Of a DNA stretch of 64,000 bases, positions 498 to 27,514 are shown in pieces. The notes under the pieces were generated by a model, which saw nothing but the letters and a program-made list of their open reading frames with translations, made no database searches and was not told the origin of the DNA. Origin of the DNA: Malacoraja senta (taxonomy: Eukaryota); contig JAXLNO010005746.1 in the NCBI GenBank assembly GCA_038087875.1, positions 1 through 64,000 of the forward strand, given 5' to 3'. Position 1 is the first letter of the stretch. Each line of letters starts with the position of its first letter. Both the position numbers and the translations under genes were made by a program.

Positions 498-558
498 AAA
501 TGTGAAGCTGGGAGAAACAATATATATATGTGGATAGGGACGGAGGTTAGGGAAAAGG

Positions 559-789: not shown

Positions 790-903
790 CACGTAATCAC
801 CTACGTAACTCCTCATAAAATAAAGATCAAACTTCAAACTTAGGTAAGTTCTTGTTTAATCTTACTATTTTACTTCGGAGTCACGTGAGTGACTACGTGA
901 AGA
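790..903. repeat. DIRS internal complementary region (ICR) encoding the circle junction
   Basis: 790-868 is complementary to the 3' terminus (559-637); 868-903 matches the reverse complement of the 5' terminus 5303-5338 (35/36); junction reads cttactattttacttc. Confidence 0.88.
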
Positions 904-1071
904 TTTTAAAGCTTTGTGATTTCATGCCGTGGATCAATCCCGGCTTCTCACTGCATAGATTGACTCGGAACGAGAATAATCAATCATGCATTCATAATAA
1001 CATTTGTACCACAAATGCAGTAATTCATTTCAAGAATGAAATGAATCAGATCCCCTTTAAACCAGAGGAAT

Positions 1072-1933: not shown

Positions 1934-2050
1934 TTCTTAATATAAGAAAGGTACTGTTTTTGAGTGCTCTTCCTCCAGGCTGCCGTAAGCATGTCCACAG
2001 TATGCTCAGACAGTCCTCGTCCCAGAAAAGGCATTCTTAAAACCTGCAAA

Positions 2051-2431
2051 TCAACAAATCCAAACGATCATATAATGGATGTTGTTCCCCTGTACAGGGT
2101 ACAGCAATAAATTACTCTTTTTTGGGACTTTCATCAACATTTGTGTTGTAAATTCTAATATCAACGGATACCATGGCTGTGTAGGCCAATCTGGTACTAC
2201 CAATACCCTTGAAGCAGCATCTTGCCTGATTTTAAGCAAACATTGGCTTATGAAGCAGAAAGGTGGAAATATATATGAAAACATACCACCCCAATGTAGC
2301 GAGAAAGCATCAATCGCCACTGCTCCTGGATCTGGTTTCCATGAGACATATCTCGATAGCTGATGATTCAAGTCGATGTCGGTCATTCCAAATCTGATGA
2401 CTATATCATTGAATACCCCTTGATTCAACAT
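2051..2431 (-). pseudogene. DIRS pol-associated DNA N6-adenine methyltransferase-like domain remnant
   Basis: YVSWKPDPGAVAIDAFSLHW...YIFPPF...VLVVPDWPTQPWYP; FPPF corresponds to the [DNS]PP[YFW] motif; lies after RNase H as in DIRS pol. Confidence 0.75.
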
Positions 2432-2743
2432 CCATTCTTTATTATCATGGAACTTTTCGTGACCTGGTGTCTGCTAGCGTTCATTCTACCTGGTAGATAG
2501 ATAGCTGAAATCCAAATGTTCTTTTCAATACACCAAGCCCAAAGTTGATTAACCATTTTGTCACAAGACACCGACTTAATTCCATATCATTAATATAAAC
2601 AACTACTGTTGTTGAACTTGAACATGCTTATTAGTTGTGTTAGAACAATAAGCTTGGAGCCCATAGAAACATCCTAGAAGCTCCAAATAGTTAATTCCCC
2701 ATGTCTGCAGTAACAATGACTCTTCCTGATTCCATCTGCCTTC

Positions 2744-3088
2744 TCAGCTAGATGTTAAGTCAGTTGCACCCCATCCTGGTGCACTGGCATCAGTTTGTAA
2801 TATCATGGAAGGTTGTTCAATCAGCACTTTGCTGGAACTGCTTGAGACATGTAGAATCCACCACTGCAGATCAGAAACAGCATTTGTTGTTAGTTGCATG
2901 GTTCTATCAAAATGACCAACATGCATTCTCGGTGCCTGTTCTTTAAGTCTCTGCAGCTGTTGATAATGTAATGGTCCGAATTGGACTGCTGGGAATGCTG
3001 CTACTAATTTTCCCAGTACACGAGCCACCTGTCTAATTGAAGGTTTTTGCTCGTTTAGGAGATTACTGCAATCTTTAATCAAATCCAC
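2744..3088 (-). pseudogene. DIRS RT-RNase H connection and RNase H N-terminus
   Basis: VARVLGKLVAAFPAV...DLQWW...LQTDASAPGWGA (DAS first acidic RNase H residue). Confidence 0.8.
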
Positions 3089-4235
3089 CCTTTTCCCTGG
3101 GCAAAGTAATATTCATTTGGACTGAATCAATTGTGAACCCCAAATAATTAATAGAGGTACATGGTGTTAACCTAGATTTCTGTGGATGAATTAGAAACCC
3201 CAAATTTTCAAAAGTTGATTTCACAACTGCAACAGATACTTCTGTTGACTGTTTTGTCTTTCCTATAAATAAGACATCATCCAAATATGCCATTAGTACA
3301 TGCCCCTGGCTACTCAGCAAGCCCAGAATTGGTTTTAACAATTTTGTGAATATTCTGGGTGCAGATATTAACCCATTAGGCAGAGCTTTGAACTGCCACA
3401 ACTGGTTCATCCATTTAAATTTAAGATACTTCCTATCTTCTGAATGAACAAACACTGAATAATATGCATCTTTCAAGTCTATAGTTGCCATATAACATGC
3501 TTCTGAAATAAGCTGTTTGGCAGTCACAAATGTTTCCATTTTAAAATGTCTAAATTGCACAAAAGGATTCAGATTTATCAAATCTACAAGAATCCTACAT
3601 CCTCCATCCTTTTTTGATCGAGGGAATATATTTGACACAAATTCGTGACTTTGGTAGACTGATTTTTCAATAACCCCTTTTTTATATAGGGTTTCAATTG
3701 CAACCTGAACCTCTATCACTTCTTTTTGTACAAAGTGCAGAGTTCGGCTAGTAACATGCTGAACAGGCAAATCATAATTTGGATTGAATTCAATTCGAAA
3801 TCCTTGTATATTATTCAGGATTACCACATCTGAAGTAATTTTCTTCCAATTATTATAGAAGAAATGTAACCTGCCTCCAACTTTTGGACTTAATCCAGTT
3901 AGTATGTTCCCATGAGAACCAGGTCCACCTACCTCTTGAGTCATTTGAGTACCCTGAGATTCCTGGGTTCTCCCGGAAGCACGCCCACTGGTTCTTGCTC
4001 CCGCTGCAGGCCGCCAACTACGTCCCTGCGTTGATGAGCGACTTGGTCCAGGATCCGTATGACGTCTGAAAGGATACTTCCTCTTTACAGACTTCACAAC
4101 CATTGATGTCTTCATCAATCCTGTTATCGCTTCATCTTCCAACTCTTTAATACATCTCCCGAGATCTCTCCAAAGAGTAAGTTGGGTAATTTGTATATTA
4201 CTTGGTTTGCAGAGTGCTGCGAATTTCGGATTCAT
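3075..4235 (-). pseudogene. DIRS reverse transcriptase (386-aa open segment; N-terminal part overlaps gag end)
   Basis: VGGRLHFF...SNIFPRSKKDGGCRILVDL...IDLKDAYY...ALPNGLISAPRIFTK...AYLDD. Confidence 0.9.
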
Positions 4236-4500
4236 AGTAGACCGTATAGCACTTCTCGAAGTGGGTGCTGCATAGCAACCCCAGTGCTTGCTGATGCAAC
4301 TTCGTCATCTTTTGGTTGTTACCTGCTATTCTGGTAAAAGCAGTTATTCCAGAACCCAGCAGCTTTAATATTCTCTGCAACTGATTCCAGATACTCTTGC
4401 AGTCTCATCCATTTCATGCTGTTCCAGCTAATGGTAAACCAGGTAATTTATTAAGGAGGCCAGTTCTTCCTAATGGCTCTCCTGACCCTGCCGGGGCAGT
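4050..4500 (-). pseudogene. DIRS gag-like ORF1 remnant
   Basis: Frame-broken peptides (QQALGLLCSTHFE; NPKFAALCKPSN...CIKELEDEA) upstream of RT; assigned mainly by position. Confidence 0.45.
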
Positions 4501-5277
4501 GAATCCTACTACCAGGGGTGGAACATCTGGCAGCTGCCTTTCATCGCCTTGTACAGCCTCACCGTCAGAGTCGGGGTCTGAAATCTCATGACCCGTAGCA
4601 CGCTCCTCATTCCTGAGGGTGCATTCCATCAGCCCTGAGCCAGGTGCTGTTAAGCTGCTCCTGCAGCTTGGATTACAGTACACTCCTTCCTGAGTGAACG
4701 TTTGCTCCAACAACCTATGAAAAAGGCTTCTATTTGGGCAATACGCTCGAAAGCAGTATCTAGCCCTGTACCAGGAGCTGTTTGAACTGTTTCCAGCAGC
4801 TTGGCTTTCAGAACACTCCTTCCTGAGTGAACTTTGCTCCAACAGCCTGTGTAAAAGGCTTTCTATTTGGGCAATACGCTCTAAAGCAGTATCTAGCCCT
4901 GGAGCTTCTTCATTGCCTGGGACTCCCTCCGTTGGGATTTAAACTTTGTCTTTTGCCCGACAGGCGCTGACTGTGTTTTCACCAGCCCCAGGTCCACAGT
5001 CGCTATGCTCACCGCTGGCGACTGTACCGGGGTTTAGAGGCGGTTGGTCTCTAACCGCGGACTCCCGACTTTCCCGACTTCTGTCGGCTATGTCGCTCGC
5101 CTCTTCCCCCTGTCCGTTTTTTCCCATGGCGTCGGTGGAAAAAATCGCCATAGACCCACAGTAAACGGACCTGGAAAACCTGTAAAAAAGTTTTTACTTA
5201 CCTTGTAGTTGAAAAACTACAAACCACTCGAGGAGCACTGCTCCTCACGTCCGTTTGCGTCAAGGCGTCTGACGTAA

Positions 5278-5339
5278 TGACGCGCAGGCGCACTGGCGGG
5301 GTTCTTCACGTTGTCACTCACGTGACTCCGAAGTAAAAT
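5278..5339 (-). repeat. DIRS 5' inverted terminal repeat
   Basis: Minus strand begins (a)ttttacttcggagtcacgtgagtgac; matches the ICR and the 3' ITR. Confidence 0.88.
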
Positions 5340-5825
5340 TGTTGTGGGTTAGTTACTTAAAACTAGAAAATTCAATGTTCCCACCATTGGGTTGCAATCT
5401 ACTCGAGCGGACTATCAGATATTACTGCATCTGTACTTCCTTGTGTCTTCCTGTTTCTCAACCTATTTTGACGTGAGTTGCTAGCATTGTGTTGTCACAC
5501 TGCTACACTGGTGATGGAGAGGCTTGTTCTGGGTGATATTTGTGGGGTTGGGTTTGCTGTAGGTGGAACTGCAACCACCCCGAGACCCGGTTTGATTCTG
5601 ACCTCCGGCGCTATCAGTGTGGAGTTTGCAGGTTCTTCCTGTGACACCGTGGGTCTCCTCTGGGTGCTCCGGTTTCCTCCCACATCCCAAAGACTTTGTA
5701 GGTTATTTGGCCCTCTTGTCGATTTGCACTAAATGTGTAGGAAGTGCATGCAAAAGTGGTGTAACATGGGACTAGTGTGAACGGGTGATTGATGGCCAGT
5801 GTGGACTTGTTGGGCCGAACGGTCG
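5339..5825 (-). repeat. Inverted copy of the spacer block found at ~36140-36635 (also ~29395-29890); continues at 495-558 on the far side of the DIRS
   Basis: 5462-5486 cctattttgacgtgagttgctagca is the reverse complement of ~36487-36511; 498-560 matches the reverse complement of the (TA)n-containing flank at ~17390-17470. Confidence 0.85.
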
Positions 5826-5830: not shown

Positions 5831-6237
5831 ATAGAATCAGAATCACACTTTATTCGCCAAGTATGTTTTCCAAAATAAGGCTCTACTTTTTTACGAATTT
5901 GATGTTTAAGAAAATAAAATACCGTGAGAAATGTGGCAACTCTTGTGTACTGTATCATATAATCTGCTATTAATACACTCTTGTCCTTTGCTTCAGCTGT
6001 GCTTATATAAAGTACTGAACTTCTACTGAATTCTATGCAAAAGAAATGTCACTGTACCCATGTACATGCGATAATAAAATACCATTGAACCATTGAGCAA
6101 TGGGGATACAAAAACGGTTACATGATTACAACTGTGGACATGCGTTAAAAGAATAAGATAAAAATTGAGGGTAATCGTTATATCAATATTGTTATTCTGA
6201 AGGAATGACGCCCAATAATCATCGTTTAGCTTTTCAG

Positions 6238-6307
6238 GGCCAGAGAGGGTGTTCACACCTTGACCCTACAGCATCACCACACCCCACCTATGTCCAATCT
6301 AACTTGA
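6238..6307 (+). CDS. Probable terminal (cytoplasmic) exon of an upstream receptor paralogue: (R)AREGVHTLTLQHHHTPPMSNLT*
   Basis: Acceptor ttagcttttcag|g, paralogous to 16237-16339 but 25 nt shorter, which shifts the frame; upstream exons are not in the window. Confidence 0.3.
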
Positions 6308-6309
6308 CC

Positions 6310-6530
6310 ACTTGAGGAGGAATTTCTTTAGCCAGCGGGTGATGAATCTGTTGAATTCATTGCCACAGACGGCTGTGGAGGCCAAGTCAATGGATATTTT
6401 TGGAGTGGAGATTGACAGGTTTATTCGGGGTGTCAAAGGTTGTGGGGAGATGGCAGGAAAATGGGATGGAGATGGAAAGATAGATCATCCATGATTGAAC
6501 GGCGGAGTAGACTCGATGGAGCAAATGGCC
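6310..6530 (+). mobile_element. CR1 3' fragment
   Basis: gaggaggaatttctttagccagcgggtgatgaatctg...; paralogous to 16340-16570. Confidence 0.8.
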
Positions 6531-6701
6531 AAATAAAGGGAATGTTTGCGGTGGTGGACAGAACGCCAGTCAAGTAGGCAAATGTCACCAGGATGAAGCA
6601 GAGCTTCGAGGAGATGCTCCAATCCAGGCAACTGGAGAGCGTTGCAGCGCAGTCCTGATAGGTGCATTGTCCGTGGTGAGGAGGCTGGGGGAGGTGGCAA
6701 G

Positions 6702-6758
6702 TGAGTCACCAAGTTAGTCTCGAACCACTGCAAAGTCGTTTCCTGAGTAAACGGAAAT
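6702..6758 (+). promoter_or_regulatory. Candidate TATA-less proximal promoter motifs of gene 1 (AP-1 plus two ETS cores)
   Basis: TGAGTCA 6702-6708, gtttcctg 6738-6745 and acggaaat 6751-6758, 85-140 bp before the ATG; conserved at 39006-39062; motif match only. Confidence 0.4.
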
Positions 6759-6842
6759 TGACTGTTTGACTTCTGTTGTGAATGAGGTAGGGAACAACTC
6801 AAACGCAGTGCAGGGACCAAACCGATCCAACGCAGCTGAGAC

Positions 6843-6939
6843 ATGGCGGTGGGACAGGGAGAATTCACCCACCAGAAACGGCCCAGATCCAGGGGAACAG
6901 TCGCTCTGTTGGTTCTTGTCGCTGTTGGTCTCACATCAG
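6843..6939 (+). CDS. Receptor gene 1 exon 1: signal peptide MAVGQGEFTHQKRPRSRGTVALLVLVAVGLTS(G)
   Basis: Kozak gacATGG; basic n-region and hydrophobic h-region; phase-1 donor tcag|gtaaat matches the phase-1 V exon; conserved at 39147-39243. Confidence 0.75.
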
Positions 6940-7169
6940 GTAAATCGTTGTTTTACAAAATGCTCTGTTCATTAGAATTATTTACTGGCGCCTTGAATTA
7001 TTTGTAACCAAGGACCTCTCTGTACTGTGTGGGGGGCTGATGATAAATTGCTCAACACTCGTTAGTTCCTGTAGAGACTTCCATCAGCGGTTGTTGTCGT
7101 GTTGTATGCAGCCAAATTGCACACAGCTAGCTCCCTGTGCAGAAGGGAGATAACTACCTGGACCTCATT

Positions 7170-7550
7170 GAAAGTTACCAAATAGTGAAAGGCCTGGACA
7201 GAGTGGATGGGGTGAGGATGATTCCACTAGTGGGATAGTCTAGGACCAGAGCTCACAGCTTCAGAATTAAAGGACATTCCATTAGGAAGGAGATGAGGAG
7301 GAATTTCTTTAGTTAGAAGGTGGTGAAACTGTGGAATTCTTTGCCGCAGAATGCTGTGGAGGCAGTCAATAGATATTTCTAAGGCAGAGATGGCTAGATT
7401 CTTGATCAGTACTGGTGTCAGGAGTCCTGGGGAGAAGGCAGGAGGATTTAGTTGAGAGGGAAAGATAGATCAGCCATGATTGAATGGAGGAGAGTAGACT
7501 TGATGGGCCAAATGGCCTAATTCTGCTCCTAGTACTAATGAACTTATGAT
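7170..7550 (+). mobile_element. CR1 3' fragment in intron 1
   Basis: ctcattgaaagttaccaaatagtgaaaggcctggacagagtgg...cctaattctgctcct. Confidence 0.8.
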
Positions 7551-7879
7551 CTGTTCTTCAGAATTATTTACTAGCACCTTGAATTATTTTGAGCCACAGA
7601 GCAGACTACTGGGCTACGAGTTGCTCAAGATAAAGTGCTTGCAGACTTGTTCTTTCCTGCACTAATGACTGTTGTGATGCTGTACACAGCCAAATGGCAC
7701 ACCGCTAACTCCCTGTAGAAAATTACCCGACAGCTGGCCTTGTTGATGTTGGGTGTAGGGGTAACTCTTGCCCCCAGACCAGAGAGTTTGCTCCACTATT
7801 CTGGTGCAAACTATCTCCAGGTGAACTTTCTCAGTGACTTGACAGCAGATCAGCTAAATGCTTTACCCCTTATATATCT

Positions 7880-8000
7880 CTTGACTTCCTCACTCCCTGA
7901 CTGTTGGTCTGAAGAAGGGTCTCGACCCAAAACGTCACCCATTGCTTCTCTCCAGAGATGAAGCCTGACCCGCTGCGTTACTCCAGCATTTTGTGTCTAT
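7880..8000 (+). mobile_element. Penelope-like terminal repeat fragment with hammerhead-ribozyme-like motif (7906-7939)
   Basis: ggt-ctgaaga-a-gggtc-tc-gaccc-aaaac-gtc-acc followed by family sequence gcctgacccgctgcgttactccagca. Confidence 0.65.
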
Positions 8001-8115
8001 CAAAGCCACACGGCACTCCCTCCACGCACTGCAATGGGAAATGTTGAACCTAAACCTTAGCACATTCAAAGATAAAACCTGTGAAAGTCAGCCATTGGCA
8101 ACAGGCGGGCATCTT

Positions 8116-8160
8116 AAATGAGGAAGTACTGTCCCATTTAGCATTTGGAGAAGTTGTGGT
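8116..8160 (+). promoter_or_regulatory. Candidate intronic myeloid-type element (PU.1-like plus RUNX motif)
   Basis: aaatgaggaagt 8116-8127 and TGTGGT 8155-8160; both retained in gene 2 intron 1; motif match only. Confidence 0.3.
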
Positions 8161-8344
8161 AATCTCTCCCTTCTGAGAAAAACCAGCTGCCTTACAGACT
8201 CTGCTGCTCGAGCTGTTCTTCACACCGTGCTTTCCCCAGCCTCTGAGCTCCTTCAAGGCATTTGTCTTGTGGCTTGTGAGCGGACCTGAACTGATCTGAT
8301 GATGTGCCTCCACCCCAGCTCCTGAATCTGCAGAGTTTCACATG

Positions 8345-8585
8345 TGTTAGAGTCATAGAGTGATACAGTGTAGAAACAGTCCCTTCAGCCCAACTTGCCC
8401 ACACCGGCCAACATGTCTCAGCAACACTAGTCCCACCTGTCCACGTTTGGTCCATGTCCCTTCAAACCTATCCTATCCATGTACCTGTCTAACTGTTTCT
8501 TAAATGATGGGATTGTCCTTGCCTCAACTACCTCCTCTGGCAGCTTGATCCATACACCCACCAGCCTTTATGTGAAAAAGACACC
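8345..8585 (-). mobile_element. CR1/HER1-type LINE 3' end
   Basis: Reverse complement reads gtgggtgtatggatcaagctgccagaggaggtagttgaggc...; catagag tail. Confidence 0.7.
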
Positions 8586-8869
8586 TCATGATTATGCCAC
8601 GTGGACGTGGAGTTTGAAACATCAGTGGCAGATCCAGCTTCCACCACAGGCCGGGAAGATTAGTTCAATGGGGCACAAAGTGCTGGGGTAACTCCGTAGG
8701 TCAGACAGTATCTCATGGTCTTGACTTGAAACGTCACCAATCCATGTTCTCCACAGATACTGCCTGACCTGCTGAGTCACCACTGGCTATTCAGCTTTAG
8801 TAAAACACAAAGTGCTGGAGTAACACTGCAGGTCAAGCTGCATCACTTGGTGACTTTCCTTTAGTGACT

Positions 8870-9160
8870 TTAGAGATACAGCACGGAAACAGGCCCTTTT
8901 GCCCACCAAGTCCACGCCGTACAGCGACCACCCGGCACACTACCACTAGCCTACTCACTAGGAACAATTTACAATTTTAACGAAAGCCAATTAACCTACA
9001 AACCTGCACGTCTTTGGTGTGTGGGAGAAAACTGGAGAAAGCCCACGCTGTCACGGGGAGAACGTGGAAACTCCGTACAGACAGCACCCGAGGTCAGGAT
9101 CAAACATGGGTCTCTGGCGCTGTAAGGCAGCAACTCTACCCCTGTGCCACTGTGCCACCA
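8870..9160 (-). mobile_element. HE1/V-SINE-type SINE
   Basis: Minus strand has a tRNA-derived head (gtggcacagggg...gagttgctgccttacagcgccagagaccc) and V-SINE core. Confidence 0.8.
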
Positions 9161-9880
9161 TGTCTCTACCTGTAACATTACATATCCATGTTCTCCAGCG
9201 ATGTTGCCTGACCTGCTGAGGCATCACAGGCAGCTGCCTATTCAGCTTTAGTAAAGCACAAAGTGCTGGAGTTCAAGTTCAAGTTCAAGTGAGTTTATTG
9301 TAACGTGTCCCTGATAGGACAATGAAATTCTTGCTTTGCTTCAGCACACAGAACATAGTAGGCATTTACTACAAAACAAATCAGTGTGTCCATATACCAT
9401 ACCATACCAGTAAGTCAGCAGGTCAGGCAGCATCTCTGGAGAACATGGATAGGTGACGTTTACGGTTGAGACCTGAATAAGGGGTAGGCCATTTTGGACT
9501 CAAATGAGGAAAAACATTTTCACCCAGAGAATTCCTCTTTCTCCAGAGATAGTTCCTGACCCGTTGAGTTACTCCAGCACTTTGTGTCCTTTTGTGTATT
9601 AACCAGCATCTGCAGTTCCTTGTTTCTACTTGTTCAATGGGGAAGTGGGTTGTAGTGAGATTGAACACAGGGTGGGTCAGATTGAGTGACAGGTTTGGCT
9701 TCCTGTCACAGGACCACCACTCAGGTCAAGCCACGCCCACAGGGAAGGATGATCTGGGCGCCAGGTAGATTCACAAGCACTTCTGCTTTCACTGGAACTT
9801 GGGGAACAATCCTGGTGAAATGGGAATTAACACCAGCGGGAAAAGCATGAAAGTGCAACAGGTTCTATGCAAAAGAAGAG

Positions 9881-10014
9881 AGACACAAAATGCTGGAGTA
9901 ACTCAGCGGGACGGGCAGCATCTCTGGAGAGAAGGAATGGGTGAGGGAACATCACCCGTCGGTTTCTCCAGAGATGCTGCCTGTCCCGCTGAGTTACTCC
10001 AGCTCTTTGTGTCT
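9881..10014. repeat. Inverted repeat of Penelope-type ends (50-bp arms, 47/50, 34-nt loop)
   Basis: 9881-9930 vs reverse complement of 9965-10014; paralogue at ~42248-42381. Confidence 0.8.
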
Positions 10015-10171
10015 ATCTTTGGTGTAAACCAGCACCTGCAGTTCCTTGCTGCACACGATCTATGCGAAACCATGAACCTGTCTGAACACACAAATTACAT
10101 GTTTTTTATTGTTAAACCTCAGCTTGTGTTGCTGCAGTGTGAGTGATCTTTCATCATTAATGTGCCCACAG

Positions 10172-10495
10172 GGTCAAGGGGAATAACTGGACACAAGGAG
10201 GTGAGGGGAGAGTTGGGGCAGTCGGTCACTGTGGAATGTCCATATGATCAGGAATACAGTGACAACAGGAAGCTATGGAGTAAAGGTGATGATTACTGGA
10301 CATCTGAGACCGTGGTTTCTACTGATCACCCACGACAAGGGGGAACTTCGATGACTGATAACAAAACAGAACAGATACTTTCAGTAACCATCGACAAACT
10401 GGAGAAGAGTGATGAAGGATACTACTGGTGTGTGATAGGAAAGGCAATATTGTCATTCAATGAAAAGACCTCCATCTCATTGAAGGTTTCTGAAG
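10172..10495 (+). CDS. Receptor gene 1 exon 2: Ig V-set domain of CD300/pIgR/TREM (MDIR-like) type
   Basis: VRGELGQSVTVECPYD...W...LSVTIDKLEKSDEGYYWC (C-X63-C); acceptor cccacag|, donor gaag|gtacat; 324 nt, phase 1-1. Confidence 0.92.
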
Positions 10496-10593
10496 GTACA
10501 TTGACGATCTCTCCTCACTCTCCCAGATGTGAAAATTCCAGCCTGGGATTTCCCGGCCTCGGTCATGACGGTGCCACATCCCCGGGGGTCCGT

Positions 10594-10635
10594 GGGGGGG
10601 AGGAGTTTGGGGGGAGGTGAGGGGGGGTAGGGGGG
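10594..10635 (+). other. Strong G-quadruplex motif G7-N8-G6-N6-G7-N2-G6
   Basis: Four runs of 6-7 G read directly; copy at 42962-43003. Confidence 0.8.
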
Positions 10636-11074
10636 ACCCGCTGCATGGGGCCACACCAAGATCCCACTGTCCCAGGAGCAGTGTGGGGGGTGGGGGGGAT
10701 CTCATCAATGGGGACCGGCGGTCCTGCTGCTGACGGTTCATTTCCCCAAACACGATCTCTCCGGGACCAGAACCTCTGGTGCCCCCTCACTGGAGCAGGG
10801 GGGGTGGAACCACCCCCTCACCCTCTCCCCCTTCCCGTCAATGTCACACCCACCACACACACAACATCTGAAGAAGGGTCCCAAGCCTATACATCGTCTA
10901 TTCATTCCATCCACAGATGCTGCCTGACTTGCTGAGTTACTCCAGCACTTTGTGTATTGCTCAAGATTCCAACACCTGCAATTCCTTGTGTCTCACAAAC
11001 TATGGTGATTCATGAGCTCAGTTTATTGTTGTCGCCTGTACTGAGGTACAGGGAAAAGCTTTTACCATGTTTCC

Positions 11075-11270
11075 AATGAGGGCCAAGTCATTGGGTATTT
11101 TAAGTGGAGATTGACATGTTCTTGATTAGTATGCATGTCAAGCGATATGAGGAGAAGGCAGGAGAATGGGGTTGAGAGGGAGAGATAGATCAGCCATGAT
11201 TAAATGGCGGAGTAGACTCAATGGACCAAATGGCCTAATTTTGCCCCTATTATTTATGAACTTATGAACT
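11075..11270 (+). mobile_element. CR1 3' fragment
   Basis: gagggccaagtcattgggtatttttaag...gatagatcagccatgattaaatggcggag. Confidence 0.75.
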
Positions 11271-11811
11271 AAGAATCCGCATGATGTGAGTGATATAGAC
11301 TTTACACTGAGCCACACAAACTGTACAAGATGAAATACTCAACGGGTCGGGCAGCATTTATGGAGAGAGACGAGACTTAATGTTTCAGGTAGATACCTCC
11401 AACCAAATTGCATTATTTTCAATTCAGTCCACGTAATGAAAATAGTCCATGGATCCTCCCACTCCCAAGTTCTTCTCCAACGTAGAAGACACTTGCCTAA
11501 CTCCAGCAGCAGGCAGACAACACAGCCTGTGGGACTCTGAAGGGCATGAAAGAAGTCAATGAATGCTTGCGACCATCCGGTGGCATCTTAATGGGTGAGC
11601 CTCCTGTCTAGATCAAGAGGCTTGGTCCATCTATGGTGGCCTCAGAAGGATCTTTGCCCAAATGTGTGGAGTCGGATTTGAACCCAGGAATCTCCCCACA
11701 CCGAGCAAGAGCGTTCCCAACTGAGGCATCTCCCACACCTCACTAAAGAGGCACAGGACGTGCTCTCAGACATTTAATGTTCAAAAACTTCATTCACTTT
11801 ATCTCCACAAG

Positions 11812-11896
11812 GGTCTCAAACAAGCCGCCCAGATATGATCATCACCACCGAGGCAGCAAGTTCCACTGAGTCTCTTGGTTCAACACCTCCAAACAG
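11812..11896 (+). CDS. Receptor gene 1 exon 3: Ser/Thr/Pro-rich stalk (G)SQTSRPDMIITTEAASSTESLGSTPPN(R)
   Basis: Acceptor ttcactttatctccacaag| (AAG, non-optimal), donor aacag|gttagt; phase 1-2 joins the V and TM exons in frame. Confidence 0.75.
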
Positions 11897-11949
11897 GTTA
11901 GTAACTCGAAGAGCCAACTCAGCCTCACCTGAGAACAAATTAGTTAAGT

Positions 11950-12190
11950 TCAGTTCAGCTCAGTTAAAAGATACAGCGTGGAAATGGACCCTTTGGCCCA
12001 CCGAGTCCGCTCTGATCAGCGATCACCCCATACACTAGTTCTGTTCTACATACTAGGGGCAATTTACTACAAACCGGCATGTCTTTGGAATGTGGGAGGA
12101 TACTGGAGAACCCAGAGTAAACTCTTGTGATCACAGGGAGAACATACAAACTATGTACTGACAGCACCAGTAGTCCGGTAGGATCGTATC
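11950..12190 (-). mobile_element. HE1/V-SINE-type SINE
   Basis: gatacagcgtggaaatggacccttt...tgtgggagg... Confidence 0.7.
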
Positions 12191-12821
12191 CTATTGTTAG
12201 TAAAATCATGCCCAGTACTTTGAGAAAGCGTGGCTGATCACATTCCAGTCCATTGATAAATAGTCATTGGCCTTGATTAAAGTCCCTCTGTCCTTAGTAC
12301 ACCCAGTGGCCCTACCATTGTGAATGTCTACCCTTATTTGATGCCAAAAACAAATAACTTCACACTTATCATGGTTCAATACCGGCTGGCATTGCTCTGC
12401 CCAACATACCAGTTGCTTCTTATCCCTCTGTGGTCTATGATTATCGTACTATCCAAAATGCTACAATTTTGGTGTAATCTGTAAACACGTTAATCATACT
12501 TCCAACAATAACATCTAAGGCCGGCAGATGGGAATAGTGTCGATAAGGACATCTTGGTCGGCGTGGGGAAATTAGGTCCAAGGACATGTTTTCATGCTCT
12601 ATGTCTGACCACCAACATGAACATCTAAGTTGTCAATGTATGTAGTCATGGAACACCTCCAAGGAATGGGTGCATGTTGCGATATAAACATCTTACCAAT
12701 GTCTACGCCACAACCTTGGATCACACTGAATGATTCCGTGTGCAATATGATGGAAATAATCTCCCAGCGTTGATCTTTGATAACTCTGTGTGGAAGTAAT
12801 AATATTTCCTTGGATTTCCAG

Positions 12822-12929
12822 GGACATCGTGTTGAATGTTCGCCGTGTTTGGGGTGTGTCACGCTGGGTACTCTTTGGAGTTCTGCTTCTCTTCCCGGTT
12901 TCCATCAGCTGTGTGACAACTTTTAAAAG
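12822..12929 (+). CDS. Receptor gene 1 exon 4: transmembrane exon (R)DIVLNVRRVWGVSRWVLFGVLLLFPVSISCVTTFK(R)
   Basis: Acceptor tttccttggatttccag|, donor aaaag|gtaaaa; phase 2-2; hydrophobic helix with an N-terminal Arg. Confidence 0.8.
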
Positions 12930-13027
12930 GTAAAAGTTTGTAATCTCTTCACTCTGGTGATGACATTAAATTCAATTGGAAATGATGGGAATTTACTTTA
13001 GAATTCTGGAGATAAAGTGTGGACATA

Positions 13028-15216
13028 CAGTGCCCTCCATAATGTTTTGGACAAAGACCCTTCATTTATTTATTTGCCTCTGTATTCCACAATTTGAGAT
13101 TTGTAATAGAAAAAAATCACATGTGGTGAAAGTGCACATGGACAGATTTTATTAAAGGGTATTTTTATACATTTTGGTTTCACCATGTAGAGATTACAGC
13201 TGTGTTTATACACAGTCCCCCCATTTCAGGGCACCATAATGTTTTGGACTCATTGCTTCACAGGTGTTTGTAATTGCTCAGGTGTGTTTAATTGCCTCCT
13301 CAATGCAGGGATAAGAAAGCTCTCAGCACCTAGTCTTTCCTCCAGTCTTTCCATCACATTTGGAAACTTTTATTGCTGTTTATCAACATGAGGACCAAAG
13401 TTGTGCCAATGAAAGTCAAAGAAGCCATTCTGAGACTGAGAAACAAGAATAAAACTGTTAGAAACATCAGCCAAACATTAGGCTTACCAAAATCAACTGT
13501 TTGGAACATCATTAAGAAGAAAGAGAGCACTGGTGAGCTTACTAATCGCAAAGGGAATGGCAGGCCAAGGAAAACATCAGGCCAAGATGACAAAAGAATT
13601 ATCTCTATAAAAAAAAAAACCCCAAACACCTGTCCGACAGATCAGAAACACTCTTCAGGAGTCAGGCGTGGATTTGTCAATGACCACTGTCTGCAGAAGA
13701 TTTCATGAACATAAATACGGAGGCTACACTGCAAGATGCAAACCACTGGTTAGCCGCAAAAGTAGGATGGCCGGCTTACAGTTTGCGAAGAAGTACTTAA
13801 AAGAGCAACCACAGTGCTGGAAAAAGGTCTTGTGGACAGATGAGATGTACAGGGTCTTGGTGAGACCACACCTGGAGTATTGCGTACAGTTTTGGTCTCC
13901 AAATCTGAGGAAGGACATTATAGCCATAGAGGGAGTGCAGAGAAGGTTTACCAGACTGATTCCTGGGATGTCAGGACTTTCATATGAAGAAAGACTGGAT
14001 AGACTTGGCTTATACTCGCTAGAATTTAGGAGATTGAGAGGGGATCTTATAGAAACGTACAAAATTCTTATGGGGTTGGACAGGCTAGATGCAGGAAGAT
14101 TGTTCCCGATGTTGGGGAAGTCCAGGACAAGGGGTCACAGCTTAAGGATAAGGGGGAAATCCTTTAAGACCGAGATGAGGAAAAACTTTTTCACACAGAG
14201 AGTGGTGAATCTCTGGAACTCTCTGCCAAAGAGGGTAGTTGAGGCCAGTTCATTGGCTATATTTAAGAGGGAGTTAGATGTGGCCCTTGTGGCTAAGGGG
14301 ATCAGGGGGTATGGAGAGAAGGCAGGTAACGGGATACTGAGTTGGATGATCAGCCATGATCATATTGAATGGCGGTGCAGGCTCGAAGGGCCAAATGGCC
14401 TACTCCTGCACCTATTTTCTATGTATCTATGTACCTATGTAAGATTAACATATCAGAGTAATGGCAAGAGCAAAGTATGGAGGAGGGAAGGAACTGCCCA
14501 AGATCTAAAGTATACCACCTCATCTGTGAAACACGGTGGTGGCGGTGTTATGTCCTGGGCATGTATGGCTGCTGAAGGTACTGACCCATTTATCTTCCTT
14601 GGTAATGCAACTGCTGATGGTAGTAGCATAATGAATTCTGACATGTATAGAGACATCCTATCTGCTAGAGGTTGACGGTTCATTCTACAGCAAGACAATG
14701 ATTCCAAACATATTGCAAAAACAACAAAGGAATTTTTCAAAGCTAAAAAATGGTCAATTCTTGAGTGGCCAAGTCATTCTGAACCCAATTGAGCATGCCT
14801 TTTATATGCTGAAGAGAAAACCGAAGGTGACTCGCCCCCAAAACAAGCATAAGCTAAAGATGGCTGCAATACAGGCCTGGCAGAGCATCACCAGAGAAGA
14901 CACCCAGCAACTGGTGATGTCCATGAATCTCAGACTTCAGGCATTCATTCCATGCAAAGGATATGCAACAAAATACTAAACATGACTACTTTCATTTACA
15001 TGACATTGTTGTGTCCCAAACATTATGGTGCCCTGAACTGGACTATGTATAATCACTGCTGTAATTTCTACCTGGTGAAATCAAAATGTATAAAAATCTG
15101 AAAATGTGCACTTTAACATATGTGATTTTTTTTTCTATTACTATTCTCAAATTGTGGAGTACAGAGGCAAATAAATAAATGATGGGTCTTTGTCCCAAAC
15201 ATTATGGAGGGCACTG
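13028..15216 (+). mobile_element. Tc1/mariner (IR/DR-type) DNA transposon, defective, interrupted by CR1
   Basis: TA|cagtgccctccataatgttt...aaacattatggagggcactg|TA; ~200-bp TIRs with inner direct repeats; transposase remnants (paired-like HTH, GRPRK, WTDE, QDN, NPIE). Confidence 0.92.
13846..14440 (+). mobile_element. 5'-truncated CR1 inserted in the Tc1 transposase just after WTDE
   Basis: tgtacagggtcttggtgagacc...ttttctatgtatctatgtacctatgt; Tc1 resumes at aagattaac. Confidence 0.9.
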
Positions 15217-15460
15217 TAGGCCCTACAGCCAACCAAATCCGCGCTGACCAATGATCACCCCGTACACTCGCACTATCCTACACATGAGGGACAATTTACA
15301 ATTATACAGAAGCCAATTAACCTACAAAACTACACGTCTTTGGATTGTGGGAGGAAACCGGAGCACCCGGATAAAACCCACGCTGCCTTACAGCGCCAAA
15401 CCCGGGTCTCTGGCGCTGTAAGGCAGTAACTCTACCGCTGCGCCACTGTGCCGCCCTGGG
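15217..15460 (-). mobile_element. HE1/V-SINE split by the Tc1 (its 3' tip is at ~13005-13027)
   Basis: Rejoined flanks gagataaagtgtggaca-TA-ggccctacagcc resemble SINE gagatacagcgtggaaacaggcccttcggcc. Confidence 0.7.
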
Positions 15461-15499
15461 TCATTTCCTCGGGTAAAATTTGATGGTAGAGATTATAAA

Positions 15500-15860
15500 C
15501 TGCGTTTTAATTGTTATTCAAGGAAAAAAACAGCCGAGATGTTGGAGATGGGGTCGGCAGCGGTGGAGGGAGGAGAAGAACAGTGCCGGTGAGCTGGCTG
15601 GGAGACGGCGTGGGAGGTGAGGGGAAAAGGGTGCGTTGGTTGGTCGAGGTGTGGGCGGAGTGCGAGTGGGCTGCTGGAGGCCCTGCAGCAGCCGGTGGAT
15701 CGGGTGCCGCTGGAGGCCCCACAGAGGTCGGGGACGAGCGTGCGGAGCGGACACGTCCTGCAGCGGCACGGAGCGGCGGTGGAGGCACCAACAACATCGC
15801 CAGGCCAGGCCGACCCCTGCAACTCCCACCCAGTGCAGTCCCCACGACAACGAGACTTTA
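15500..15860. other. GC/CpG-rich island of unknown origin in the last intron
   Basis: High GC and CpG content, internal repeat gctggaggccc x2, overlapping low-complexity ORFs; absent from paralogous 5.85 kb position. Confidence 0.5.
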
Positions 15861-16236
15861 AGCCCAAAATATGACAATACTTTTTTATCAATTTGATGTT
15901 TAAGAATATAAGATACTGCCAGAAATGTGGCAACTCTAGTGTACTGTATCATATAATCTGCTATTAATACAATCTTGTTCTTAGCTTCAGCTGTGCTTAT
16001 ATAAAGTAAGATTTGTACTGAATTCTATGCAAAAGAAATTTCACTGTACCCATGTGCATGAGACAATCAAGTACCATTGAACCATTGAGCAATGGGGATA
16101 TAAAAATGGTTACATGATTACAAGTATTGAACTTGGACACGCGTTAGAACAATAAGATAAAAATTAAGGGTAATCGTTATATCAATATTGTTGTTCTGAT
16201 GGAATGACGTCCAATAATCATCGTTTAGCTTTTCAG

Positions 16237-16339
16237 GGCCAAAGAGGGTGTTCACCAGTTGCAGATGGACAAATCTCATCACCTTGACCCTACAGCATCA
16301 CCACACCCCACCTATGTCCAATCTAACTTGACCACTTGA
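16237..16339 (+). CDS. Receptor gene 1 probable exon 5: cytoplasmic tail (R)AKEGVHQLQMDKSHHLDPTASPHPTYVQSNLTT*
   Basis: Acceptor gtttagcttttcag|g; phase 2 matches the TM exon; open to TGA; AATAAA ~395 nt downstream; stop abuts a CR1 fragment, so tentative. Confidence 0.45.
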
Positions 16340-16733
16340 GGAGGAATTTCTTTAACCAGAGGGTGATGAATCTGTTGGAATTCATTGCCACAGATGGCTG
16401 TGGAGGCCAAGTCAATGGATATTTTTAAATTGGAGATTGACAGGTTTACTCAGGGTGACAAAAGTTGTGGGGAGAAGGCAGGAGAATGGGATGGAGGGGG
16501 AAAGATAGATCATCCATGATTGAATGGCGGAGTAGACTCGATGGAGAAAATGGCTGAATTCTGTACCTATGTTTGCAGACACGTCTGTACATCCTGACAT
16601 TCACCCAAAAGACAGCAGTACATAGACTAGAACTCAAAGCAGGCTCTCCAGAATGTGAACTTTTAACTTTACTACCAATTGAATTGTTGTGTAAAACCCT
16701 GCACATTGAATAATGATTAAAATAATCCAATGT

Positions 16734-16739
16734 AATAAA
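16734..16739 (+). terminator. Candidate polyadenylation signal of gene 1 (copy at 49102-49107)
   Basis: AATAAA downstream of the putative last exon; absent from the paralogous blocks at ~28975 and ~35720. Confidence 0.3.
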
Positions 16740-19548: not shown

Positions 19549-20802
19549 AGATTAGTCTTTAGATTCTGGAGTAGTTCCTGAGGATTGGAGGGTAGCTAAT
19601 GTAACCCCACTTTTTAAAAATGGAGGGAGAGAGAAAATGGGGAATTACAGTCCAGTTAGTCTAACATCGGTAGTGGGGAAACTGCTAGAGTCAGTTATTA
19701 AAGATGGGATAGCAGCACATTTGGAAAATGGTGAAATCATTGGACAAAGTCAGCATGGATTTATGAAAGGTAAATCATGTCTGACGAATCTTATAGAATT
19801 TTTCTAGGATGTAACTAGTAGAGTGGATAAGGGAGAACCAGTGGATGTGTTATATCTGGACTTTCAGAAGGCTTTCGACAAGGTCCCACATAAGAGATTA
19901 ATATACAAACTTAAAGCACACGGTATTGGGGGTTCAGTATTGATGTGGATAGAGAACTGGCTGGCAGACAGGAAGCAAAGAGTAGGAGTAAACGGGTCCT
20001 TTTCAGAAGGGCAGACAGTGACTAGTGGGGTACCGCAAAGCTCAGTGCTGGGACCCCAACTATTTACAATATATATTAATTATTTGGACGAGGGAATTGA
20101 ATGCAACATCTCCAAGTTTGCGGATGACACGAAGCTGGCAGGCAGTATTAGCTGTGAGGAGTGTGCTAGGAGGCTGCAAGATGACTTGGATAGGCTGGGT
20201 GAGTGGGCAAATGCATGGCAGATGCAGTATAATGTGGATAAATGTGAGGTTATCCACTTTGTGGCAAAAACAGGAAAGTAGACTATTACCTGAATGGTGG
20301 CCAATTAGGAAAAGGGGAGATGCAACGAAACCTGGGTGTCATGGTACACCAGTCATTGAAAGTAGGCATGCAGGTGCAGCAGGCAGTGAAGAAAGCGAAT
20401 GGTATGTGAGCATTCATAGCAAAAGGACTTGAGTATAGGAGCAGGGAGATTCTACTGCAGTTGTACAGGGTCTTGGTGAGACCACACCTGGAGTATTGCG
20501 TACAGTTTTGGTCTCCTAATCTGAGGAAGGACATTCTTGCCATAGAGGGAGTACAGAGAAGGTTCACAAGACTGATTCCTGGGATGTCAGGACTTTCATA
20601 TGAAGAAAGACTGGATAGACTCGGCTTGTACTCGCTAGAATTTAGAAGATTGAGGGGGAATCTTATAGAAACTTACAACATTGTTAAGGGGTTGGACAGG
20701 CTAGATGCAGGAAGATTGCTCCCGATGTTGGGGAAGTCCAGAACAAGGGGTCACAGTTTAAGGATAAAGGGGAAATCTTTTAGGACTGAGATGAGAAAAA
20801 CA
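19549..20802 (+). mobile_element. CR1 LINE RT region, disrupted; split by L1, 3' end at 27225-27511
   Basis: YLDFQKAFDKVPH...GVPQSSVLGP...FADDTK; continues in register after the L1. Confidence 0.92.
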
Positions 20803-21121
20803 TTTTTTTTTTTTTGAAAATATTTTTTATTGGAGATAAAACACAACATATTATCATCATTACCAGTCTTACATTTTTAAATTGATAATATCGTCAATTA
20901 TTATTACATTGTCTCCAATACCTTTTGCCTTTTTTTAAAAAAAAATTTAAACTAGATAGAACTAAAAAGATAGATGAAGTAAAGAAAGAAAAAAAAAAGA
21001 AAACAGAGAAGAAAAAGATAGTTAAAGAAGAATGGAAACATTTATTAAGATAAAAAACTTCGTTCGAGATATATTCGTACATTTCAGAGTATAACATTTC
21101 ATCCATTCTTTAGCCCGAGTG

Positions 21122-24100
21122 CTAGTCAGGTTCTTGTGCTGAACCATTCTGACCCTTTAAATAATCAATAAAGGGAGACCATGTTCCAACGAATAATTCC
21201 TGTTTGTCCAACAGGGCAAATCTGATTCTTTCCACATTTAAGGTCTCCGTCATTTCTATAATCCACATTTTGATTGTGGGGGTTATAGGGCCTTTCCAAA
21301 ATTTTAGAATTAATTTTTTTCCCGTTATTATACTATAACCAATAAAGTGTCTTTGTGTTGTTGTAAATGTTTGATTTAATTCTAATGTTCCGAGTATTAT
21401 TAGTTTTGGATCCGGGTCCAATTGTGTGCTGGTCACTTTAGATATTATACTGAAAATATTTACCCAGAATTTTTTTATTTTTATACAGTTTGCAAACATA
21501 TGAGATAAGTTAGCTTCTAAATGTTGACATTTATCACATATAGGTGAGATATGTTGAAAGATTTTATGTAATTTTGTTTTTGAATAATGTAACCTATGTA
21601 TTACTTTAAATTGTATTAAAGAATATCTGGCATTTAATGAACATTGATGTATGTGTTGTAAACTTTCTTCCCAAGTATCTTTCGTTATTATTTGATTTAA
21701 TTCTTTTTCCCATGTTTGTCTGTGTAAGTCCGTCGATGGAATGTTACTGTCTAATAAAATATTATATATATATGATATTAATTTTTCTGTATTAGGATGT
21801 TTATTCCAACATTCATCAAGAATTTCTGAATTTCTAATTCGAAAATTTTGAGTATTCGATTTTACATAATCTCTGAGTTGAAGATATCTGAAAAAATCAT
21901 TTCCTCGAAATCCATAAGTCTGTTGCAACTCCTGAAATGTAAGAAAAGTGCCTTCCTTGTAAAGATGTCCCATATTTTTGATTCCATATTTCTTCCATTG
22001 TGTAAAACCCCTGTCCAACCATGAGGGTTTAAACAAAGGGTTATTCACAATTGGAAGAATAAGTGATGTTATCTAATTTTAATGTATTTTTTAATTGTTT
22101 CCAAATTCGTATAGCACTAAATATTATAGGGATTTCCATATACATTTTTTTGTTTAATTTAGACGTAGCAAATAATATCGAGCCGATATCAAAAGGTAAA
22201 CAATCTTCCTTTTCCATTTTTAACCAATCTGGTTGTTGATCTATTTCTTCCAACCAGAAATTCATATTTTTAATATTAACTGCCCAAAAATAAAACAGGA
22301 AATTTGGTAGAACCAAGCCTCCATTTATTTTTGATTTACACAAATGTCTTTTGTTTATCCTATGATTCTTATAATCCCAGATAAAATCATTAACAATGGA
22401 ATCCAATTTAAAAAAAAAGTTTTTTGACAAATATATCGGAATTGTCTGAAAAAGGTATAATATTTGTGGTAAAAAAATCATTTTTATGGCATTAATTTTG
22501 CCAACCATTGAGATAGGAAGTGTTTTCCAATATTGAATATTCTTATGTAATTTGTTCAGTAATGGGGGAAAATTTGCTTTAAATAATGATGTATATATCT
22601 TAGTTACGTAAATGCCTAGGTATTTGAATTTTTCATTTACTATTTTAAATGGAAATTGTTGTATTATCTGTTTGTTGTGTTCCCTTATTGGCATAATTTC
22701 ACTTTTATTCCAATTTATTCTGTATCCTGAGAGTGAACCAAATTGGGTTATTAGCTTTAATAAGTTTGGAATACTAATTTCTGGTTTTGTAATCTAAATT
22801 AGTACATCATCTGCGTATAGAGAAATTTTATTCACTGTATCCTTTGTATTATACCCATGTATTTCCGGATGACCCCTAACTCTTTCTGCGAGTGGCTCAA
22901 TAGCAAGCGCAAATAATAATGGAGATAACGGGCATCCTTGTCTACAACCTCTAGATAGGCTGAATTTAGATGACAACCTTTGGTTTGTTAATATTCTAGC
23001 CGTAGGGTTTGTATATAACAGTCTTATCCATGTGCAGAATTTCTCCCCTAGCTGCATATTTTCCATCACCGAAAATAAATAGGACCATTCAACCTGATCA
23101 AAAGCTTTTTCAGCGTCAAGTGAGATTATTGCTAGATCTTCATTAATAATTCTCTTAGAATATATAATATTAAATAATCTTCTTAGATTATAATATGAGT
23201 ACCGTTTCTGAATAAAGCCTGTTTGGTCAGGGTGTATTAATTTATTCATCACTGTACTTAATCTATGCGCTAGTATTTTAGTTAATATTTTCTGATCTGT
23301 ATTTAAAAGTGCAATTGCTCTATATGATCCCGGATCTTCCGGATCTTTATCAACTTTAGGAATAAGTGTTATTATAGATTCATTTAAAGTATCTGGAAGT
23401 TTCTGTTGTGTATAGATATGCTCATACAGCCTTTGTAAACGTGGGGAGAGCAAGTCATAAATTTTTTTATAGAATTCAGAGCCTAAACCATCTGGTCCTA
23501 CTGCTTTACCATTTTTTAAAGAGCCAATAGACTCTTCAATATCCTTTATCGTAATCTCCCTTTCTAATAATTCTCTATCGTTTGAGTCTAAACCTTTTAA
23601 ATTACATTTTAGTAAAAAATCTGCTATTCCTTCTGGTTGTACTACAGTTTTAGTTGAATAAAGATTATGATAGTATTGGAGAAATCTCTCGTTTATATCC
23701 TTGGGCATTTTTAATTATTCTCCTGTATCTGTTCTAATTTTATGAATTATTTTTTCCCCCTCCATTTTTCATAACTGACGTGCTAATAGTTTTTGTGGTT
23801 TGTCTCCAAACTCGAAATGTAATTGTTTGGTTTTTTGATAAAGTTTTATTACTTGTTCTGAATACATTTTGTTTAATTTATATTTCAATACAGCAATTTT
23901 ATTATGTTTTAAAATAGATGGCATTCTCGCATTTTCTATATCTAGTTGCTTGATTTCCCTTTCCAATGTTTGTTGTTTAATCCTCTTTATTATAAAATAC
24001 TTGGGCAGAAATTAATGCACCTCGAACAAACGCTTTAAACGTTTCCCACATAAGAGAAGTGGGTGTGTCAGGGTTGTCATTTACCTCAAAAAATATTTGA

Positions 24101-27511: not shown

Positions 27512-27514
27512 CTT

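Follow-up and report, generated by a model that had tools for sequence, protein, structure and literature searches.

Two intact genes of the CD300/pIgR-like receptor family of cartilaginous fish, of the activating type and with the product most likely ending in the exon named tail B below, lie in tandem in the 64,000-nt stretch of Malacoraja senta DNA that we analyzed (hereafter, the window). We put the probability of this reading as a whole at about 0.75. As the initial annotation had proposed, both genes code for a type I receptor that has a leader, one V domain of the CD300/pIgR type, a Ser/Thr/Pro-rich stalk and a single transmembrane (TM) segment, and the pair belongs to a multigene cluster of cartilaginous fish. 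The finding adds two intact single-domain members of activating type to the skate CD300/pIgR-like (MDIR-type) family and revises the 3' end of the gene model; the kind of receptor is not new. The coordinates of the features are listed in Table 1.

Table 1. Features of the two receptor genes and their surroundings (window positions)
Feature	Position	Strand	Basis or remark
Gene 1 exon 1 (start codon and signal peptide, long charged N-region)	6843-6939	+	ATG, GT donor
Gene 1 exon 2 (V-set Ig domain, CD300/pIgR type)	10172-10495	+	Pfam, PDB, fold, cysteine columns
Gene 1 exon 3 (Ser/Thr/Pro-rich stalk)	11812-11896	+	AG/GT borders
Gene 1 exon 4 (TM helix, W..RW.LF arginine, KR stop-transfer)	12822-12929	+	Hydropathy, skate identity
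Gene 1 tail B, most likely terminal coding exon	15523-15592	+	23 codons plus TGA; the protein would have 227 aa
Gene 1 tail A, tail exon of the initial annotation, unconfirmed	16237-16339	+	Open frame, CAG/G acceptor
ATTAAA and AATAAA, first polyadenylation-type hexamers past the gene 1 coding end	16716-16739	+	Pattern scan of 15593-17200
Gene 2 exon 1 (leader)	39147-39243	+	2 nt changed relative to gene 1 (a silent change and Ser to Pro); splice donor intact
Gene 2 exon 2 (V domain)	42540-42863	+	10 nt and 6 residues changed relative to gene 1
Gene 2 exon 3 (stalk)	44180-44264	+	Identical to gene 1
Gene 2 exon 4 (TM)	45190-45297	+	Identical to gene 1
Gene 2 tail B exon	47891-47960	+	Identical to gene 1
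Gene 2 tail A copy	48605-48707	+	1 difference, Ala to Val
Tandem segmental duplication, copy 1	8281-31629	.	Partner 40650-64000, period ~32.37 kb (blastn self-comparison)
3'-end remnant of the preceding gene unit, tail-A-like with a 25-nt deletion	6208-6335	+	0.5 kb upstream of gene 1 start
Tc1/mariner-type transposase remnant enlarging intron 4	13668-14675	+	Pfam HTH_Tnp_Tc3_2

Exon structure and skate relatives

The initial annotation had proposed five exons, ending with tail A. In this model AG precedes every acceptor and GT follows every donor, and the phases chain as claimed into 717 nt, that is, 238 aa and a stop codon. Its leader, V, stalk and TM exons stood up to the comparison with other skates, whereas the fifth exon had no protein match and no excess of conservation. 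An in-frame stop lies two codons 5' of the gene 1 ATG, the stalk exon of gene 1 encodes 47% S/T/P, and the hydropathy maximum of the protein is at residues 181-203. The gene model is far beyond chance, because the V exon matches Pfam V-set with an E-value of 2.6e-12 and the leader, stalk and TM exons share 88-99% of their nucleotides with exons of annotated genes in two other skates. The hexamers listed in Table 1 may serve in the polyadenylation of gene 1. Within the 64-kb window we found no further host gene, only transposon ORFs; we took the minus-strand ORFs that overlap tail B (15514-15952) and the leader (6485-6934) to be fortuitous.

The two closest annotated relatives are P0155 of A. 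radiata ('CMRF35-like molecule 3', 246 aa, one V domain; locus on CM021389.1) and P0002 of L. erinacea ('pIgR-like', XP_055510911.1). Both are automatically predicted, and the leader, V, stalk and TM exons of the window match them junction for junction. They share with the window genes the leader peptide, the junction peptides (for example, VSE/GSQTS, common to the window gene, P0155 and P0002), an RW-motif TM segment and a short, homologous tail. The leader peptide is also the N-terminus of P0153. Further, the A. radiata and L. erinacea loci are 88-95% identical to the window in nucleotide sequence and are arranged as tandem arrays. The leader and TM exons are 97-99% and 96-98% identical, respectively, to those of the two skates, compared with 92-95% for the introns. 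In contrast, the V domains of P0155 and P0002 are only 70-77% identical to the window V domain, with dN exceeding dS. The window stalk is ~19 residues shorter than that of P0155, but two A. radiata units have a stalk exon of this 85-nt form as well (89-91%). P0002 has three V exons whereas the window genes have one each, and intron 4 of the window is larger than that of the relatives through transposons. The Tc1/mariner-type segment in this intron showed very high repeat depth in DNA runs and is absent from the A. radiata intron; SINE-like repeats reach to about position 15460.

Annotation of orthologous genes exists for A. radiata, L. erinacea and Rhinoraja longicauda, and the NCBI names for the family are 'CMRF35-like molecule' or 'polymeric immunoglobulin receptor-like'. 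Word-index protein searches with the A1 profile, P0155 and P0002 as queries returned no protein of this window and none named MDIR. Since related skates already list the family under automatic names, the window genes are added members of a known family.

The last coding exon

Tail B was located using tblastn with residues 434-468 of P0002. Its acceptor, AAG/G, fits in phase, its peptide shares 75-79% identity with the C-terminal ends of P0002 and P0155, which are automatic gene models of two other species, and the A. radiata CDS stops at the site homologous to the tail B stop. The comparison thus suggests that the product is most likely the 227-aa protein ending in tail B rather than one ending in tail A. 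Tail A may belong to the 3' UTR, serve as an alternative last exon or follow tail B as a sixth exon, joined from the donor at 15588/15589.

It is possible, but in our judgment unlikely, that the main product instead arises by splicing of the TM exon to tail A (238 aa) or has a six-exon form, in which the tail B donor 15588/15589 is joined to 16237 (260 aa). The acceptor of tail A, TTTTCAG/G, is nearer the consensus than AAG/G of tail B, and the frame, acceptor and stop position of tail A persist in two copies of A. radiata and in L. erinacea. The join from tail B to tail A is in frame as well, and its GTGAGC donor, which overlaps the tail B stop codon, is kept in other skates. However, the tail A peptide had 0 matches among the 185 fetched proteins, a sliding conservation profile showed no peak at tail A compared with the surrounding 800 nt, and the peptide carries no ITIM, ITSM or ITAM. 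All 10 substitutions among the copies change an amino acid, and a tyrosine of tail A is missing in one A. radiata copy. The substitutions between species in tail B are likewise all amino-acid-changing, and the coding-constraint test therefore fails to discriminate between the two tails.

The tandem duplication and the state of the genes

The second model of the initial annotation proved real and intact and lies 32.37 kb downstream. The five-exon models of genes 1 and 2 differ at 13 nt, with eight codons changed in amino acid and three silent, and their V domains are sisters in the tree (100/99). Per-500-nt counts and the exact list of differences placed a jump in the identity of the two copies, from ~96.5% to 99.92%, at position 10450/10451, where the V exon nears its 3' end. 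Over 21 kb, the copies differ at 17 positions (99.92%), whereas their 5' parts are 3.5-4% different, with several hundred bases of indels. The view of the initial annotation that the cluster is expanding rests on a single, presumed and very recent duplication of 32 kb. The presumed switch point of recombination at the V exon is a side observation.

Seventeen differences in 21 kb are close to the level of heterozygosity, and the second copy could in principle be an assembly artefact, in which two haplotypes of one locus were placed in tandem. We regard this as improbable: the window has no gaps (no N), the 5' parts differ to the extent given above and the V exons by 10 nt, the pattern of identity is what one would expect if unequal crossover or conversion had joined two paralogues, and the same unit forms tandem arrays in A. 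radiata and L. erinacea.

The surroundings of the genes bear on whether they are silent or decaying unprocessed pseudogenes that are still open by chance. A broken remnant of the neighboring unit precedes gene 1, and transposons fill intron 4 and the intergenic DNA. All splice sites and the open frame are nevertheless intact in both copies, and the leader and TM exons are visibly constrained across species, and decay is, in our estimate, improbable. The order around the remnant, tail A followed by a short spacer and the next leader, is the same in the A. radiata array. A match of 1-497 to 46310-46807 was considered as a third gene unit and rejected, as it lies inside a multi-copy Tc1/mariner element.

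The public sequencing runs that matched the V-to-TM stretch or the V exon were X1 and X2 only, and both are genomic DNA. On 10440-16439 they were ~1% diverged from the window, with even depth over the introns and contigs that crossed the exon borders; splice joints were absent, and the joints listed were all inside transposon copies.

The V domain, the TM arginine and the receptor class

When the V exon was compared with PDB using phmmer, the matches were pIgR (2e-27), CD300lf (2.7e-13), CD300a (4e-10), TREM2 (5e-5) and antibody V domains (~1e-3). The pIgR score sums five domains, and the best single pIgR domain scored 35 bits versus 53 bits for CD300lf. The predicted fold (AF2, pLDDT 93) gave CD300lf as the top Foldseek match (TM-score 0.87-0.92); ranks 1-10 were CD300lf/CD300f, followed by pIgR D1, CD300a and TREM. 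By sequence and predicted structure, the V exon thus encodes a V-set domain that is closest to CD300lf/CD300a and pIgR, next to TREM, and far from antibody V domains. The initial annotation had named a grouping with TCR, Ig or NITR domains as the outcome that would speak against it; the PDB rankings, by which the affinity to antigen-receptor V domains was judged, and Foldseek placed the domain on the CD300/pIgR side.

C22 and C86, which form the canonical B-F disulfide, are invariant in the family alignment, and the domain carries SDEGYYWC (the D.G.Y.C motif). A second intradomain disulfide between strands C and C' (W-C ... C motif) is a defining trait of CD300/pIgR V domains. In both window genes, these positions are Ser/Ser. 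Both C-C' cysteines are kept in 15 of the 30 aligned relatives, and one or both are lost in some members from skates, sawfish and sharks. The dN/dS of the V exon against other skate V exons was 1.3-2.1. The excess of dN over dS and the lost disulfide are side observations, useful, together with the switch point above and the TM motif below, for the evolution of paired innate receptors before bony fish.

Translation and hydropathy showed a single V domain, a stalk, one TM segment with Arg and a short tail of ~24 residues without an ITIM or a Y-based motif. Of the 185 fetched proteins, 15 had the TM motif W..RW.LF; they come from sharks, rays, skates and the bowfin Amia, and the conservation of the motif over >400 million years is a further side observation. 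The sister proteins P0169 and P0168 combine an ITIM-type tail with V domains that belong to the same skate clade, and P0153 has the same inhibitory-type TM segment and tail start. The window genes are probably the activating half of a paired activating/inhibitory family, and their products presumably pair with an adaptor.

If the genes are transcribed, as we presume, the V domain would bind a ligand that is under diversifying pressure, at the end of a short and probably O-glycosylated stalk. The TM arginine would pair with the acidic residue of an ITAM-bearing adaptor of the FcR-gamma, CD3-zeta or DAP12 type, and the receptor paired in this way would activate leukocytes, the presumed cell type. 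It would be the activating counterpart of the sister genes that bear near-identical V domains on an ITIM tail. An older survey did not find an FcR-gamma homologue in shark genomes (PMC4016189), and the presumed adaptor is therefore putative for this lineage.

The activating members of mammalian CD300 (CMRF35-like), such as CD300b/c/d/e, likewise have one V domain, a stalk, a charged TM segment and a short tail, with ITIM-bearing inhibitory relatives in the gene cluster, and the V fold resembles those of CD300lf, CD300a and CD300c (Foldseek TM-score 0.82-0.92). However, the identity to mammalian CD300 is ~30%, the window V domain is without the C-C' disulfide, and the charge in the TM segment of the window genes comes from an arginine close to the outer end of the helix, within a motif that was compared among fish sequences. 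The V domains of pIgR are of the same subtype and give the best summed sequence score, but pIgR differs in having between two and five of them, together with an uncharged TM segment and a long sorting tail. That the genes are a pIgR orthologue transporting secretory antibody is hardly credible: the best PDB sequence match is pIgR and relatives are named 'pIgR-like', but that match is the five-domain sum described above, each window gene encodes a single V domain, a charged TM segment and a tail of ~24 residues that has no sorting region, and the chondrichthyan V domains are separate from the tetrapod pIgR domains in the tree (98/97).

The MDIR1-5 cDNAs of the clearnose skate include ABC86796, ABC86797 and ABC86799. 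According to a later paper, the skate MDIRs form a multigene activating/inhibitory family with CD300/TREM/pIgR-like domains (Cannon et al. 2006, via PMC3031540). The window family shows a modular build too, in that between one and six Ig domains are combined with shared TM exons; the tandem arrays, and the occurrence of RW-TM and ITIM forms in one skate V clade, fit that description as well. The family is probably the one first described as the skate MDIRs.

Receptors coupled to FcR-gamma are usually given a bony-fish origin. As a tentative and rather doubtful proposal, the abrupt rise in identity near the 3' end of the V exon may mean that unequal crossover or conversion diversifies the family, by combining one unchanged stalk/TM/tail backbone with differing V exons that are under positive selection. 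If true, receptor diversity would arise here through exon shuffling in the germline, and the arginine-bearing W..RW.LF helix, shared by sharks and bowfin, would mark an adaptor partnership that predates this origin.

Gene models and their relatives in other skates

Both gene models were recovered. Each of the five exons proposed for gene 1 was found at its exact position, with AG before every acceptor and GT after every donor, and the exon phases chained into one frame as predicted, giving a spliced sequence of 717 nt that encodes 238 residues and a stop. The ATG of gene 1 at 6843 is preceded, two codons 5', by an in-frame stop. The second model exhibited the same splice signals and an open frame. 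Eight residues distinguish the products of the two genes. Of these, six are encoded by the V exon, two of the six lying ahead of the Ig core; the leader exon contributes one, at its end, and the last exon of the initial annotation (tail A) another.

An exhaustive HMMER search using the V domain yielded 1536 proteins at E-values up to 0.001. The top matches were chondrichthyan and bear the NCBI name "polymeric immunoglobulin receptor-like" or "CMRF35-like molecule". Among the relatives, P0155 of Amblyraja radiata ("CMRF35-like molecule 3", 246 aa, one V domain) and P0002 of Leucoraja erinacea ("pIgR-like", 468 aa, three V domains) begin with the leader peptide of the window, almost letter for letter. 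Their junction peptides (leader/V, V/stalk and stalk/TM) and their TM are also the same as in the window. The genomic loci of the relatives in these two skates (L001 and L002), with 88-95% nucleotide identity to the window, are tandem arrays of the window-type unit, spaced at approximately 10.7 kb in A. radiata. Because leader, junction peptides, TM and loci are homologous to annotated skate genes, four of the five exons were confirmed. We concluded that the gene pair is real and apparently functional, and that the initial annotation had recognized it correctly except for the last exon. The family, then considered possibly unannotated, is already auto-annotated in related skates.

The stalk exon occurs in a short form of 85 nt, as in the window, and a long form of approximately 147 nt (L001:16172-16318); the two forms are seen within single skate species as well as from one species to another. 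Batoid members (skates, electric ray, sawfish and stingrays) possess a charged extension of approximately 17 residues before the hydrophobic signal core, which in the window lies in the leader exon; shark members begin directly at the signal core.

The public sequencing runs X1 and X2 were genomic DNA, as indicated by even depth across introns, contigs spanning exon borders and the absence of splice joints, and were approximately 1% divergent from the window. Their variant contigs showed seven differences around the TM exon at 12580-13047, two of them within the exon, and three differences within tail A at 16242-16268. These variants represent either alleles or further paralogues of other individuals.

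Exons and other features of the window
Feature	Copy 1	Copy 2	Strand	Remark
Leader exon	6843-6939	39147-39243	plus	
V exon	10172-10495	42540-42863	plus	
Stalk exon	11812-11896	44180-44264	plus	
TM exon	12822-12929	45190-45297	plus	
Tail A	16237-16339	48605-48707	plus	last exon of the initial annotation
Tail B	15523-15592	47891-47960	plus	homologous to the C-terminus of relatives
Remnant, 3' end of preceding unit	6208-6335			25-nt deletion; 0.5 kb upstream of gene 1
Retroelement	550-5345		minus	reverse-transcriptase ORF 3075-4235; RVT_1, 1.3e-21
LINE-type reverse transcriptases	19823-20281, 22794-23708			intergenic region
Tc1/mariner remnant	13668-14675			inside intron 4

The last exon

The C-terminus of the relatives reads KR-K(K/R)TA.TLEM.SAVVEEG.EQRR. 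The homologous exon in the window is tail B, which is entered in the required phase through an AAG|G acceptor and closes with TGA; the protein ending there has 227 aa. The acceptor, frame and stop of tail A are kept in both other skates, but its peptide matched none of the 185 fetched proteins and its conservation did not exceed that of the surrounding 800 nt. Tail A is probably part of the 3' UTR. Past the coding end, poly(A)-type hexamers first occur at 16716 and 16734. Every substitution in tail A changes an amino acid, and the same is true of tail B; thus, the choice between them is not decided by constraint. A good donor, CG|GTGAGC, overlaps the tail B stop, and joining this donor to 16237 is in frame and would give 260 aa. 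In the upstream A. radiata unit (L001:5837-5946), the stop of tail B reads TGG, so that this copy would either be read through or have to splice at the overlapping donor.

Identity of the V domain and type of the receptor

The V exon matched the Pfam V-set (E 2.6e-12). When the V domain was compared with all PDB sequences, pIgR ranked first (2e-27, a total for five domains, of which the best scored 35 bits) and CD300lf/CLM-1 second (2.7e-13, 53 bits), followed in order by CD300a, CD300c, TREM2, TREM1, NKp44 and FcmuR; antibody V domains appeared only near E 1e-3. An AlphaFold model of the V domain, built from a family alignment of 30 sequences, had a mean pLDDT of 93, and a Foldseek search of the PDB placed CD300lf at the top (TM 0.87-0.92), followed by CD300f/IREM-1, pIgR D1, CD300a and TREM. 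Because both rankings favor pIgR, CD300 and TREM, the domain does not group with TCR, Ig or NITR, and its proposed assignment to the CD300/pIgR type was upheld.

The window gene is predicted to work in the same manner as CD300/CMRF35-like receptors, among which its predicted fold places it; however, the second disulfide (C-C') that defines them is missing, both cysteines being Ser in both window genes. Both are retained in 15 of the 30 aligned relatives; one or both are absent from several members in skates, sawfish and sharks. Identity with pIgR was rejected, as the window gene encodes a single domain, its TM is charged, its tail is short, and the tree sets the chondrichthyan domains apart from tetrapod pIgR domains (98/97). 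As far as their published description goes (PMC3031540), skate MDIRs (modular domain immune-type receptors) are a multigene family of activating and inhibitory members with CD300/TREM/pIgR-like domains. The window genes fit this account, and their family was probably first described in 2006.

The TM exon encodes an arginine within the motif W..(L/F/S)RW.LF. This motif was present in 15 fetched proteins of catshark, horn shark, electric ray, stingrays, devil ray, skates and the bowfin Amia (P0057, P0156, P0003, P0014, P0151 and P0164 among them), and in every case the tail behind the W..RW.LF helix is short and lacks tyrosine motifs. The window genes have the TM motif in common with P0167, a six-hundred-residue protein of Rhinoraja. 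Other members carry V domains of the skate-specific clade of the window (100/97 support) on an uncharged TM; in P0169 and P0168, this TM precedes a long tail bearing ITIM-like motifs, and P0153 matches them in its inhibitory-type TM and in the beginning of its tail. In the tree, the two V domains of the window are sisters (100/99) and are most closely related to the second domain of P0153 (97/87). Because V domains of one clade occur with an arginine TM or with ITIM-like tails, the family comprises paired activating and inhibitory forms, of which the window genes, judged from their sequence, are the activating type.

In NKp46, FcalphaRI, OSCAR, TREM and activating CD300, the basic TM residue pairs with an aspartate of FcR-gamma, CD3-zeta or DAP12. 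By analogy, the TM arginine of the window receptor would pair with the aspartate of one of these adaptors. A 2014 survey did not find an FcR-gamma homologue in shark genomes (PMC4016189).

Selection and the 32-kb duplication

Compared with the other skates, the window showed 97-99% identity in the leader exon, 96-98% in the TM exon, 92-95% in introns and 85-88% in the V exon. Of ten pairwise comparisons of the V exon, nine gave a dN/dS of 1.3-2.1; the value for the two copies of the window was 0.82, based on ten differences. Conserved leader and TM exons together with an apparently diversifying V exon are typical of working immune receptors, and this pattern argues against a dead gene. Mammalian CD300 proteins are lipid binders, but the fast evolution of the V domain suggests that the ligand of the window receptor is variable.

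Self-comparison of the window, which contains no N, revealed that 8281-31629 recurs in tandem at 40650-64000, the period being approximately 32.37 kb. From the leader to 10450, the copies were approximately 3.5-4% divergent and indels added up to several hundred bases; the 21,150 positions between 10451 and 31600 contained only 17 differences. Identity switches from approximately 96.5% to 99.92% at 10450-10451 (partner 42818-42819), which leaves 45 nt of the V exon on the 3' side. The switch looks like the breakpoint of an unequal crossover or a conversion, which would have left different V exons on identical backbones.

The remaining DNA of the window is transposon sequence. The retroelement sits between the remnant of the preceding unit and whatever lay farther upstream. 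The LINE-type ORFs (19823-23708), in a stretch of 30% G+C, were copied along with the 32-kb unit to 52191-56076. Nested duplications with 96-98% identity lie between the two genes (27109-32000 versus 33856-37257 and 49309-51852).
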